Positions 6,692-16,520 of a stretch of DNA of 64,000 nt are shown here, one piece after another. The notes under the pieces were generated by a model. It saw only the letters and a program-made list of their open reading frames with translations. It had not been told where the DNA came from and made no database searches. Origin of the DNA: Neoechinorhynchus agilis (lineage: Eukaryota; Animalia; Acanthocephala); NCBI GenBank assembly GCA_051530055.1, contig CM121342.1:3285489-3349488 (forward strand). Direction: 5' to 3'. Numbering within the stretch: the first letter of the stretch is position 1; every line of letters starts with the position of its first letter. A program made the position numbers and the translations under genes.

Positions 6692-6773
6692 GTAAGTTGC
6701 GGCCTCGGGCCAAAGCCCAATGACGAGTACAGTGTCCGCTCGGACGCTTCAGAGGGCACCGAAAAAATAAAAG
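6692..6773 (+). ncRNA. Candidate kink-turn structured RNA, family X copy 1
   Basis: GTAAGT, hairpin GGC-ctcgg-GCC, then GCCC-AAT-GA-cgag...GTGTCC-gctc-GGACGC...ttca-GA-GGGC (6715-6757). Confidence 0.45.
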
Positions 6774-7034
6774 AAAATTTTTTGTATCCATCGATGAAGA
6801 TCTTTGTGTCTCAATTCCACAATTCGGGATGAAAATGGACATTGAAGATGTCAATGTGACCGCGAAGCATCGACATCCTGAAGGAAATGAATTAATATTT
6901 CGAAAAACCAATTCTTGCATTCATGCAAAAGGTTTTATTGCTTTAACTTTTCGCCGGAACGATTACATTAACGTTTCATTTGACTTTGTTTCTTCAACAA
7001 ATTCCAAAGGTCTTTACAATTTAGTGCATGATCC

Positions 7035-9700: not shown

Positions 9701-10413
9701 ATATCGTCTATATATCAACGATTATTGAATATCATGAAAAGAAAACGATAATCGCTTATTTAAAGCGTAAACTTTTCTCGGCATAGAATTTGTGGACTAT
9801 TAAGCGAAAACAGAAGCAAATTTCTAGGTCGCAGATGAAATCTCGAACACAAAAACGAGATTATCGCCCCTCCCTCGCCTATGGATGCTTTCGAAGTGAC
9901 GTAATTGTTTGCGTTGCGTATTCCACGATTGCGGACTAATGTTTTACGCAAAAAACTGATCTCAGAGAAACGCTGAATTCGTCCTTTCGACCACTACAAA
10001 AAAAGACCGAAGCGGAGATGTGAAAGTTTTTAAAAACTTTTTGTTCGCCTAAATTCTTTAGTCGTATCCATCGGTTATATTATCAATCTTTCTCTCAGTC
10101 GATAGAGGCAATGTTCACCTCCGATTATCTCAATTCCGTCGGTCGTTTTTGAGGTTTTTTATACTTGAATTGATAAAATCATCGATTGAATCTGTCGGAA
10201 TATTCGACTCTGACGATCACGGTTTCAGGACCGACCGAAATTGATAACAAATTCTTTTCCTTATTTAAAAATTAACTGATTGCACATCAACGGTTTATTT
10301 TTAAGGCAAATCTTTTTAAAATGAACGTGAACGCTTTTCAGAAAATTATCATTGAATGCAATTCGACGGATATTGAACAATCTTCACCCGCACTAAAACC
10401 CCTCCATGATTAT

Positions 10414-10492
10414 CTTTCATTTTTTATGTGCCCTCTGAGATGCAATCGCACCATTGCTCATCATTGGGCTTTGACTTTTCGCCAATACTCAT
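10414..10492 (-). ncRNA. Candidate kink-turn structured RNA, family Y variant (Z)
   Basis: Minus strand GCCC-A-ATGATGA-gcaat-GGTGC-gatt-GCATC-t-CAGA-GGGC (core 10430-10469). Perfect C-box; the donor is mutated to ATGAGT. Confidence 0.45.
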
Positions 10493-10540
10493 TGTTATTT
10501 ATTTTATTTTTTAGCCAATACAAACAATTTGAATTTAATT

Positions 10541-11645
10541 TTTTTTATGTGGAAGTTTTTATTTTTTTTAAGTTTTTTTTAAGAGCATACATAATTTATC
10601 GTTTCTTCGACGCCCCTATTCATCGGCGCAGGCCAAAATGCTAGCCGCATTGCCCCGCCATATATTGAATGTCAAATTTTCTGACACAGGTTGGCGACAG
10701 GCTACTTTTCCCACGACTTATGGTGGTTTGGGAGTTCGCACCACTTCAGACGTCGCTTTACCTGCCTTCCTCTCCTCTTGCCGGGCAAGTAAAGTCTATG
10801 TCGATGCCATTTTAGGCAAATCGCTGAAGGATGCGATCTTTGAAACAGGATTATATCAATGGCATCAATTGACAGGCATCAACCAGCTCCCCGCAAATGA
10901 GTGCAAGCAGTCGTCTTGGGACATTCCTCTCGTTCAGAAGATTCACAACTCTTTCAAAGATCTTCTGGATGAGGTGTCTCAGGTCCGGCTGGTAGCCTGT
11001 TCCACGAAGGAGTCGGGAGCGTGGTTGAATGCTCTCCCTGTAGGGAAACTTGGAACTCTCCTTGCTGACTCAGTCGTCAGGATCGCAGTATCCTTGAGAT
11101 TAGGTCTACCGATTTGCATCCCGCATCGCTGCCGCTGCGGCACTATAGTGGATTCTTCGGGGAGACACGGTCTCATATGCAAGACGTCATCGGGACGATT
11201 TCCAAGGCATGCTGAAATCAATGCCATTCTGAGTAGGACCCTAAAAACGCTTTCCCTTCCAAACATTCTAGAACCCACTAATCTTTGTAGATTAGATGGA
11301 AGACGCCCTGATGGCGTGACCGTATTTCCTTGGCGGGAGGGAAAATGTTTGTTGTGGGATGCAACGTGTGTGGACACGTTGGCAAACTCCAACATCAGCC
11401 ACTCGAAAAAAGGTCCAGGAGGAGCGGCGACGGCTGCAGAGGATCGGAAATGTTCAAAATACAGGGAGCTAATCCGAAATTACCATTTTGTCCCCTTCGG
11501 TGTGGAAACGTATGGGGCCTTGGGAGGGCCGGCACTGGTCCTCGTGAAGGAATTGGGGAAACAGCATTTTGGCCTGCGCCGATGAATAGGGGCGTCGAAG
11601 AAACTATAAATTATGTATGCTCTTAAAAAAAACTTATAAAAAAAA
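10541..11645. mobile_element. TIR-bounded element (~81-bp TIRs) carrying a CRE-derived endonuclease fragment
   Basis: 10562-10642 and 11563-11645 are inverted repeats (one mismatch, one 2-nt indel). Direct repeat AATTTGAATTTAATT at 10526-10540 and 11644-11658. Confidence 0.7.
10638..11585 (+). CDS. 315-aa stand-alone CCHC zinc-knuckle + restriction-like endonuclease ORF derived from a CRE-like element (family D)
   Basis: Uninterrupted ORF with WRQATFP...GGLGVR, CRCGTIVDSSGRHGLIC, RRPDG, LLWDATCVDT, KCSKY, FVPFGVETYG. No RT catalytic core. ATG lies in the left TIR and TGA in the right TIR. Expression is unproven. Confidence 0.6.
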   Translation: MLAALPRHILNVKFSDTGWRQATFPTTYGGLGVRTTSDVALPAFLSSCRASKVYVDAILGKSLKDAIFETGLYQWHQLTGINQLPANECKQSSWDIPLVQKIHNSFKDLLDEVSQVRLVACSTKESGAWLNALPVGKLGTLLADSVVRIAVSLRLGLPICIPHRCRCGTIVDSSGRHGLICKTSSGRFPRHAEINAILSRTLKTLSLPNILEPTNLCRLDGRRPDGVTVFPWREGKCLLWDATCVDTLANSNISHSKKGPGGAATAAEDRKCSKYRELIRNYHFVPFGVETYGALGGPALVLVKELGKQHFGLRR

Positions 11646-11730
11646 TTTGAATTTAATTAAATCGGCCCAAATCGGTTTATATTGGAAAGAGACCTCAATT
11701 AAAGGCAATGCTTCGATTACATAAGCAGCG

Positions 11731-13450
11731 ATGAATATAATAATCATAAACTGGTCGGACCGGAGGTTATCCGAATCAGAGGAGGAGGTTCTAAGACTTG
11801 GACCGAATTTCATACCCAAAACAAAGGTTAAGGATATAGAAATGCGATGTGACACAGAAATCATGGTCAGTAGATTGCCGAACGACATGATAGGTGGAAT
11901 TATGGATTATGATCTGAGAGCGAGACGAATGTCTGAGAAGTGCCGAAAAGACGATAACTTGACGCCGGAACAAAGAGCTGCTCTGAAAATTTTGTCAAAA
12001 GTTGCATCAATTTGCATATGTAAAGCAGACAAAGGGCCCGAGTTAGTTATTTTGAACTCAGCAGACTATATTCAAGCAGGTTACGGGTTATTACGGTCAG
12101 AACAATTCAACACACTTGATCATGATCCTACAGAAAAGAGGGGAAAAGAAATGAACAAAATATTGCTAGAGTTGAAGAAAGCAGCTAAAATCACGGAGGA
12201 GACATACCGAAGATGTAGATCTAATAATGCAACAACCGCAAACATGTATCTACTATCTAAGATACATAAGCCGAAACTCCAAATCAGAACGGTCTTAGCG
12301 GCGTATTTGTCGTTTAACCACTCGTTGGCGAAAATGCTGAACACGTGTATTAGGGGCTGTAGACCACTAAACGAACATGGAGTTTTAAACGGACCAATAT
12401 TAGCAGAAGAAGTGCGGAATCTTCCATCAAACACATCATGGTTTATAACGGCCGATATTAAATCTTTATTCACTAACAATCCTCTTCAAGAGACCATTGA
12501 GTTGACGGCTATAATACTCGAGAAAAACTGTGGCGTACCAAAATTGGACTTGATCACATGGTCTAAACTACTAACTCTATGCACGAAAAAATCAGCATTC
12601 AAATTCAACGACAGTATTTTCGAGCAAGTGGACGGAGTGGCGGAAGGATATAAAAAACGATATAAGAGGATTAACACACTGGTGGAGATATGTTGATGAT
12701 GTTTGCATGGTATTCAACAATGATCCCAGTGATTTAGAGGTTTAAAGTAAGCGAGAGAAAAACAATCGCATATCTTTTATGGACGTGGAAATGGTGAAAC
12801 ATGTGGACAGAATCGAAACAAAGGTATACAGAAAACCCAACATAAACTGGCACACAAGTAAATGGACATCACATTCTCCTGTGAGATACAAGATAGCAGC
12901 ATCGGATGCCTTATTCAGGAGAGCAATGAGAATATGCTCCGAGGCGAAAGGACAGAGGCAAGAAATTGACTCAATAACATCAATGCTAAGAGAGGAGGGA
13001 TATCCGAATTGGGCAATTAAAAGGTCCTTAATGAAGACGAGGATGAGTTTTCAGCGAGAGAAGAATGAGACGAACACTACATCGAAAAACAACCCGAAAC
13101 CCACCGCCAATCAGAAAATATTCTTGGAATCAAAATTCATCAATGAAGCAACTCTGAACAAATTGCAGCATCTTATAAGAAGATGCAAGACCCATTCGGT
13201 GTCAATATATTCTAAAGCAGCAACGAAGTTGGCGGGTGTATTCAAAAAGAAACCAAAACAAGAGGATAAAATTATAATCTATAAAGTACCATGCAGACAA
13301 TGTGGAAAATATTATGTTGGACAAACAAGTCAAAGACTAAAAAGCGCATTGACCAGCATAAATATTGTGTGCGCAGAGCAGATACGTCATCCGCCATCAA
13401 TAATCATGTTGTAAAAAACGAATCATGAGATCGGATTTCCACTACAACAG
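11731..13450 (+). mobile_element. Penelope-like element (RT + GIY-YIG), degenerate, 3'-truncated
   Basis: NWSDRRLSESEEEVLRLGPNF; RT motif DIKSLFT; frameshifted RYVDD near 12686; IIYKVPCRQCGKYYVGQTSQRL (GIY-YIG with CxxC), continuing out of frame as KRIDQHKY...NHVVKTNHEIGF. Confidence 0.9.
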
Positions 13451-14824: not shown

Positions 14825-16520
14825 TCCCTTGTGTCCTTCGACAAATCGTTTCGAGGGGTCCTACGCAAAGCTCACGTTTTTAGGGGAGATTTTTCAAAGC
14901 CACCGAATCGGAGCCGAGTTTCAACCCGTTCAATGACCCAACGCACCGAAGGCTTACGGGTATTTTAGAAATTCGTACTGAGCTGCGACCCCTCTTGTAT
15001 TCAACGATCACATCATTCCTTCCGATTGAGGCGTTGCGCTCACAGTGAACGAATTAGTGCATTCTCTTGATGCCGTATTCAATGCCTTTTACTTGCACGA
15101 TACTACGCTGGGAGGCGATCCCAAGGTAGTTGTCCGTGACCTGGAGAAAATCAAGATGGGGGCTAGCAAACTGGGCATTGAATTGAACACAGAAAAGTGC
15201 GAAATTCTATTCCGTAACATAGAGAGCGGCCCTGCAAAAGACGTAATAAAGCGTGACTTTGAAAATGTTGCACCCGGGATAGAAATGATCGACCTTGTTG
15301 GGCAGTTGCGTCTTTGATAGGAATGCAGAAAACTAAAATAACAGCCTTCTAAAGAAATTATCGGTGCTTTGCGATATAGTCTGCGAGCTTGGATCACACG
15401 AGGCTTTGTTCTTGATAAAGTACACCCTCTTCATCCCCAAGTTCCTTTATGTTCAACGCACTGCCCCGTTTTTCAAGCACGAGGTTCAGCGTGGCAAGCT
15501 AGATGACAGATTGAAGGACTGTCTCGAGCAAGTTTTAAATGTCCAGCTGCCAGAAGAGGCATGGCGACAAGCATCCTTGCCTGTATCTTCTGGCGGGTTG
15601 GGTATCCGGAAAACAGCAGACATATCTCTGCCCGCATCTTTAGGCTCCTATGAACGAAGCGTAGTTCAGCGCATTTTGAAATCTACTTATCATTTTGATA
15701 GGCATTTTGAAGAGGGAATCAGTGAGTGGTGTAACTGTGAATGGCCAAAAACAATCTGTGAGGGTTCGACCTCTCGTCGCAAGTGTTCAAGGCTCTCTCT
15801 TATCAGACTCAAGCGACGACGTTGTCCGTGCCAGGTTGTCAGCAGTCTCCAGTAGAGAATCAGGTGCTTGGTTGAACGCGGTCCCGTTGGCATTTGTGGG
15901 TATTCTCCTCTTCGACCAGGCAGTACGGGTCGGAGTTTCAATGAGACTGGGACTACCGATGTGTCATCCCCACCGATGCCGCTGCGGTACAAATGTGGAT
16001 TCGTCAGGACGTCATGGTCTCATCTGTAGAAAATCAGCCGGCAGATTCGCAGCCGAAATTAACATGGTGCTGAGCCGGGCACTTGTTACGCGGTAAATAC
16101 CCCCAATATTTTGGAACCTGTCAACCTCTGTAAGGACGACGGGCGTAGACCAGATTGGGTGACCGCATTTCCGTGGCGGGAGGGTAAATGCCTCCTCTGG
16201 GGCGCCATTTCTGTCGATATACTCGCAGCCAGCAATCTCACGTTCTCCGTGGTTCAAGCTGGAGGTGCAGCGAGCCCTGCGGAAGGACGGAAAACGGCGA
16301 AATACCTTGATTTAGCCCGGGTTCATGTGTTTGTGCCTTTTGGGGTTGAGACTTACGGATCTATTATAGCGAGGCTCTTCAACTCCTGAGGGATTTGAAT
16401 CGACGCCTTCAGGTTGTTGAGAGGCAACACTGCAAGCATTCAGGCGACAATTGAGGACGAGGACGGCGAACAATTATGTTTATATCTTAAAACAATAAAT
16501 TGATGAAACTTTCAAAAAAC
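14825..16520 (+). mobile_element. CRE-like family A, degenerate, with internal deletion and intact 3' end
   Basis: FYLHDTTLGGDP (RT), WRQASLPVSSGGLGIR, CRCGTNVDSSGRHGLIC, RRPDW, PFGVETYG; 3' UTR with AATAAA near 16494. Confidence 0.85.

Follow-up and report, generated by a model that had tools for sequence, protein, structure and literature searches.

The locus at 10526-11658 of the window, the 64,000-nucleotide stretch of the Neoechinorhynchus agilis genome analyzed here, raises the question of whether two long inverted repeats around an endonuclease-like reading frame constitute a DNA transposon with a captured nuclease or a structure of some other origin. The sequence-only reading had proposed a Pack-type DNA transposon or a new selfish nuclease-carrying element, with a double-primed retro-insertion among its remaining alternatives. 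Our analyses revealed that the unit is one copy, very young and truncated at the front, of an R2-like retrotransposon, with a flipped second copy of its own tail at the front; the element is an ordinary member of its family, and the insertion architecture is uncommon.

The outline of the unit was confirmed as first described. Its inverted arms, 10562-10642 and 11563-11643, are 81 nt each, 98% complementary and spaced 920 nt apart. The direct repeat that had been put at 13-15 bp is the 15-bp AATTTGAATTTAATT, located at 10526-10540 and 11644-11658, and 21 more bases precede the left arm. An open reading frame of 315 codons (10638-11585) begins with an ATG within the left arm and terminates with a TGA within the right arm. 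The parts were identified as follows:

10526-10540 (no strand): left copy of the target-site duplication (TSD), 15 bp, present once at the paralogous empty site G000:C2:3366967-3366981
10541-10584 (minus strand): inverted native A-rich 3' tail, 44 nt, including the 21 'extra' bp; tail variant in common with short copy L058, and longer than the right tail
10585-10658 (minus strand): inverted last 74 nt of the element, namely the last 26 native-frame codons including the stop, and the 3'UTR; in reverse complement it agrees with the 3' end of every family copy
10659-11562 (plus strand): 5'-truncated body, the part of the ORF after the reverse transcriptase (thumb/linker, CCHC knuckle, restriction-like endonuclease); 91-99% identity, with at least 30 copies running upstream into the RT domain
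11562/11563 (plus strand): unique junction of an 86-bp deletion, from the alignment against four copies; the junction occurs once in the genome
11563-11620 (plus strand): last 8 native codons, native stop TAG at 11587-11589 and 3'UTR, with the frameshifted TGA at 11583-11585, from copy alignments
11621-11643 (plus strand): native A-rich tail, short version of 23 nt, from comparison of 3' ends
11644-11658 (no strand): right copy of the TSD, 15 bp, from the empty-site comparison
10638-11585 (plus strand): accidental 315-codon ORF across the left-arm/body junction and the deletion

Searching the worm's own 46-Mb assembly with the body of the unit (10659-11562) returned at least 40 scored matches at 91-99% identity, all outside the window, as had been noted, and none of the matches listed carried the left arm in the arrangement of the window. 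The genome contains at least 130 3' ends of this family, of which 134 were counted. In the other copies, similarity extends upstream of 10659 into further coding sequence, and three full-length copies begin at one and the same 5' end, so that the element measures about 3.1 kb from end to end. The single ORF of two parent copies (L035 and L033) contains RVT_1 at E 2e-18, and the best PDB sequence matches of the parent RT are R2 retrotransposon proteins (E 8e-8), so that the order of domains in the family is reverse transcriptase, CCHC knuckle and then R2-type restriction-like endonuclease. The window copy begins about 40 residues past the parent RT match and for this reason lacks the RT, whose absence had been recognized from the letters. 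All of these comparisons were made against real copies instead of a consensus.

The family displays no LTRs, frequent 5' truncation, a common 3' end and insertion with target-site duplication, and it is an RLE-bearing, R2-like non-LTR retrotransposon, an assignment that refers to group membership and to no finer clade, the CRE clade of the sequence-only reading included; the homologues found bear no clade names. Short copies dominate: among 22 young copies sampled, 20 were truncations of 50-300 bp and the other two of 500-625 bp. The flanks of more than 40 family copies are mutually unrelated, and the family inserts without site specificity and is not specific for rDNA. Insertion into spliced-leader genes, typical of the founding CRE members (CRE1/CRE2/SLACS/CZAR), was not found in this family.

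Several other features of the family were observed in the course of these comparisons. At the start of full-length copies, a 21-bp unit is repeated in tandem 2 to 4 or more times, depending on the copy (L033:4829-4870, L032:4950-5000 and the reverse strand of L035), and this unit holds the start ATG with MPPPPST in frame, so that the number of units alters the N-terminus of the protein. Three copies with unrelated flanks (L016, L018 and L029) are 5'-truncated within 13 nt of the truncation point of the window copy (equivalents of 10659-10671), and this cluster suggests a preferred stop of the RT or a break of the RNA, with the qualification that the design of the query favors finding such copies. 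In addition, pairs of family 3' ends in the same orientation lie 147 bp and 575 bp apart at G000:C1:5024663-5024843 and G000:C2:15040417-15041018, which might represent satellites or tandem arrays made up of the endonuclease end.

The identity of the arms was determined by aligning the right end with four other copies and inspecting 24 3' ends. The right arm comprises the last 8 family codons, the native stop TAG, a 31-nt 3'UTR and an A-rich tail that is templated. Reverse-complemented, the family 3' end also makes up the left arm, which is longer than the right arm both ways, as it has 16 nt of extra element sequence (10643-10658) inside the region that is deleted on the right, and its tail measures 44 nt vs 23 nt, a difference of 21 nt. 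The 21 bases previously described as extra on the left are indeed present but belong to the native A-rich tail, and the TTAA beside GAGCATAC, likewise present, is simply the start of this tail. Family tails are templated and occur in several variants. The motif A8-CT(T)-A8-T-A5-CTTCC of the left arm recurs in L058 (C1:15816867), an independent short copy on another contig that has part of the tail only, and the complete left-tail sequence was found nowhere else in the genome. Since the 16 nt of element and the 21 nt of native tail are absent on the right, the left arm, whose extra tail is found in L058 too, was not copied from the right arm and demands a sense template of its own. Both arms carry a rare tail variant, present otherwise in only two copies among about 130, which indicates one source lineage for both. 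L076, another independent copy, has exactly the same truncation point as the left arm. The inverted segment 10585-10658 is a second cDNA that was severely 5'-truncated.

The insertion site could be read directly from a paralogous segment of the same contig at a distance of 70 kb, to which the left flank (10200-10540) is 97% and the right flank (11644-12000) 99% identical. The two flank matches overlap there by exactly 15 bp, so the paralogue is an empty site in which the 15 bp occur once with the flanks of the window on either side. It follows that the direct repeat is a real target-site duplication and that 10541-11643 (1103 bp) entered as one insertion; no second duplication was found around either part of the unit. 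A TSD was detectable in only 2 of the 22 other short copies, and hence the 15-bp stagger cannot be generalized to the family; the three full-length copies gave no clear TSD either. A screen for pairs of 3' ends with their tails outward covered all 50 young-subfamily 3' ends and 100 of the 129 older-subfamily pattern matches, and among those listed the pair in the window was the single occurrence.

The surroundings of the insertion gave some additional observations. An SL-RNA-like gene lies in the left flank (10381-10496, minus strand), with 75% identity over 68 nt to 6711-6778 and 90-91% identity to three closer copies at about 14411, 34418 and 46778; Rfam returned no match over 10000-12000. 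The insertion point at 10541 is about 45 bp from this gene, on what would be its upstream side, beside the gene and not within it, and the empty paralogue has the gene and lacks the insertion. About 90 bp after the insertion starts another repeat (11731-13414), copies of which are located on C35 and at 13.52 Mb of C2. It contains ORFs of 321 and 211 aa, and Pfam gave no match for the ORFs of the neighboring repeat (11731-13414 and 15364-16096), so that the PLE placed downstream by the sequence-only reading was not confirmed in this search. The 321-aa ORF shows KIHKP and DIKSLFTN, which we take to be motifs of Penelope-like RTs.

Pfam and PDB sequence searches with the 315-aa ORF gave no significant match, and a fold search was therefore needed to place it. 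An AlphaFold model built from an alignment with 28 homologues (pLDDT 71.7) was compared with PDB structures, and the seven best Foldseek matches were all R2 proteins. With VIA-align 2, the model matched the C-terminal third of the seven R2 proteins at Z 8.6-11.9, followed by the next match at Z 6.3; R2Bm 769-1085 and R2Tg 1021-1360 were aligned at Z 10.8-11.9. Residues 185-315 of the ORF also matched PD-(D/E)XK cap-snatching nucleases at Z 5-6. Both the sequence matches of the parent RT and the predicted fold of the ORF thus point to R2 (PDB 8gh6, 9dou, 9nl3), the C-terminal third of which is likewise made of linker, CCHC knuckle and PD-(D/E)XK nuclease. In contrast to R2 proteins, from which it differs with an identity of only 12-18%, the family is not rDNA-specific and has unrelated flanks, and its elements are about 3.1 kb long with 21-bp tandem repeats at the 5' end. 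The retention of the CCHC and catalytic motifs, asserted earlier, was supported by the alignment of the ORF with the 28 homologues, as C165, C167, H177 and C181 were invariant and P224, D225, D241 and K271 nearly invariant among the 29 sequences. In five of the homologues (P0026, P0030, P0037, P0039 and P0040, predicted proteins of other animals), the endonuclease tail is joined to a ubiquitin-hydrolase domain (PF00443) in place of an RT; the combination of domains may be real or may have come from the fusion of gene models.

Four other copies have 86 bp more between 11562 and 11563, encoding the conserved C-terminus with QRGNA, and the window copy is without this native C-terminus (...QRGNAA...), as had been observed, with 29 conserved C-terminal residues gone. 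With the deletion, 28 2/3 codons are lost and the reading frame changes, which gives rise to the TGA at 11583. Its junction occurs once in the genome and no source copy with the same deletion was found, and RNA folding of the parent 3' region gave no clear hairpin as the cause, only a 7-bp stem near the stop of the left arm and L076. At the other end, the first seven codons of the ORF are antisense sequence of the 3' end, and the ATG is the complement of CAT in the native codons AGC ATT. The 904-bp body has only 1 private substitution compared with 21 other copies, and seven other copies are stop-free over the same stretch as well. The ORF is open because the copy is young, and with a single private substitution its intactness says nothing about selection; the open frame is the default state of a recent copy and no sign of selection, and the ORF is an accidental by-product, a fragment without a function of its own.

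These results are best explained by a double target-primed insertion, one retrotransposition event with reverse transcription starting on the A-rich 3' tail from each of the two strands of a cut with a 15-bp stagger; we assign this explanation a probability of roughly 80%. The earlier suggestion of a double-primed retro-insertion fits all of the data. The top strand of the left arm is antisense and attached to the left flank, which means that it was made from a sense template and primed by the 3' OH of the top strand. As read from its sequence, the target is nearly symmetric, and both nicks leave 3' ends ...AATT that are able to pair with a run of A. The nick in the bottom strand would have primed inside the tail and yielded a cDNA of about 1 kb, the 5'-truncated body, and the nick in the top strand would have primed further 3' on the tail and yielded an abortive cDNA of 118 nt, the inverted left arm, halting after 74 nt of element sequence. 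With the bottom-strand primer inside the tail, the distal A run would have remained available to the primer of the top strand, which explains the greater length of the left tail. That the second cDNA was short is typical of this family, given the stop of L076 at the same nucleotide and the preponderance of 50-300-bp truncations (20/22) among young copies. The junction between left arm and body (10658|10659) is blunt with no microhomology, which fits an end-to-end template jump or end joining, and such a jump (or end joining) would be the simplest way of uniting the two products. Gap filling would then leave the 15-bp duplication. Whether one RNA or two served as template is likewise a matter of the model, and as the unit is a single fossil, the order of events is not readable from it. 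Points against double priming include the 86-bp deletion beside the right arm, which the model does not explain and which may have resulted from a template jump of the RT in the same event or from a later deletion at the DNA level, the blunt left-arm/body junction, which is unlike most junctions of L1 twin priming, the low number of other short copies with a detectable TSD, and the view of Craig et al. on non-LTR elements given below.

Two independent insertions of the same family might also produce such a structure, if an opposite abortive copy of 118 nt had hit the 5' junction of a long 5'-truncated copy to the nucleotide. The family abounds in abortive copies of 50-300 bp, and because TSDs are often undetectable, the second insertion need not have left a duplication of its own. 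Nevertheless, there is only one 15-bp duplication, around the whole unit and around neither part, the second hit must have landed at exactly one nucleotide position, and both arms have the tail variant that is present in only two other copies of about 130, so we regard this succession of events as unlikely. A rearrangement of DNA after the insertion, by fold-back replication, inverted duplication or ectopic conversion, would have copied the end of the element to its front, and it gains something from the ability of replication forks to yield inverted duplications and from the unexplained 86-bp deletion that adjoins the right arm. Such an origin is hard to reconcile with a left arm that has 16 nt of the element and 21 nt of the native tail for which the right side has no counterpart, with a target duplication that is intact and exact, and with a left-tail sequence that is unique in the genome, no donor copy with the same long tail having been found; we consider it quite improbable.

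The least probable explanation, to which we give hardly any weight, is that of a new selfish element, or a DNA transposon with TIRs (Pack-type, Mutator- or Kolobok-like), which captured a stand-alone endonuclease and expresses it. Long terminal inverted repeats, a long target duplication, an open frame of 315 codons and intact catalytic motifs speak for such an element. However, the terminal repeats are the native 3' end of a retrotransposon with A-rich tails facing outward, an origin that the sequence-only reading had itself said would refute it, and only one copy each was found of the unit, of the deletion junction and of the left tail. No other cargo was found between such termini, and the ORF lacks the conserved C-terminal 29 residues, has first codons of antisense origin and has had no time to decay. 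When further copies of the terminal repeats, other cargo or a transposase-bearing parent were sought genome-wide, a single tail-out pair emerged among the 3' ends listed. The Pack-type candidate was accordingly rejected, as no further copies with shared termini and TSDs of their own were found among the 3' ends listed, and so was a transposase-bearing parent, the termini being those of a retrotransposon.

The double target-primed insertion resembles several known systems without coinciding with any of them, and two of these, the opposite-orientation L1 insertions and the Penelope-like elements, provide precedents for it. A putative twin-priming locus at about 13.93 Mb of C2 showed no nucleotide similarity to this family and has no bearing on it. 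During L1 twin priming, according to the model of Ostertag and Kazazian, the second primer anneals inside the RNA, which gives adjacent and non-overlapping segments, usually with microhomology (PMC11702581). As in L1 twin priming, the unit is one insertion with an intact TSD in which the other nicked strand would have primed a second reverse transcription and the front segment runs in the inverse direction, and an inverted 5' segment and a direct 3' segment lie within the one duplication. It has neither internal second priming nor non-overlapping segments nor junction microhomology; instead, the second primer would also have been on the 3' tail, the same end is present twice with tails out and overlap, and the junction is blunt. 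The enzymes differ as well, RLE-type in the unit vs APE-type in L1. The closest topological match is provided by L1-mediated insertions with two reverse transcription products in opposite orientation, which were interpreted as extension of both DNA ends by RT from the 3' ends of templates, followed by ligation (PMC11702581). The L1 cases come from cultured human cells in which L1 was over-expressed and have two different RNAs as their source, whereas the unit is a germline fossil whose two products come from the same family and tail variant.

Penelope-like elements (PLEs) frequently have an inverted 5'-truncated copy at their 5' end, and Craig et al. stated that such inverted structures had not been observed in TPRT of non-LTR elements (PMC8557442). 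Here, an inverted structure was seen once, in a non-LTR element. Like those PLE insertions, the unit has an inverted 5'-truncated copy immediately upstream and inverted repeats around the whole. The arrangement is frequent in PLEs and tied to the GIY-YIG nuclease; in the present family it involves an RT with an R2-type RLE and was found once among about 130 copies.

Our results are of corrective value, since an apparent nuclease-carrying TIR transposon turned out to be a one-off by-product of ordinary retrotransposition, and for this reason its annotation as either a gene or a DNA transposon should be avoided. It is possible, though we think it doubtful, that the RLE-type (R2-like) retrotransposons of this worm start TPRT from both nicked strands on the 3' tail of the RNA and thereby give PLE-like tail-out insertions. 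If this is true, the product of second-strand cleavage by the RLE would be a competent primer for RNA-templated synthesis, and the locus together with its empty paralogue would be a clean natural record of it. Being one fossil, the locus is no more than a reason for a systematic count or a test in vitro. With its empty site proven, it offers a well-resolved natural example of an RLE-type element in which RT extended the two ends of a staggered break from one 3' tail, and as such it is relevant to second-strand priming in R2-like elements and to the question of why PLEs frequently carry inverted copies of a similar kind.
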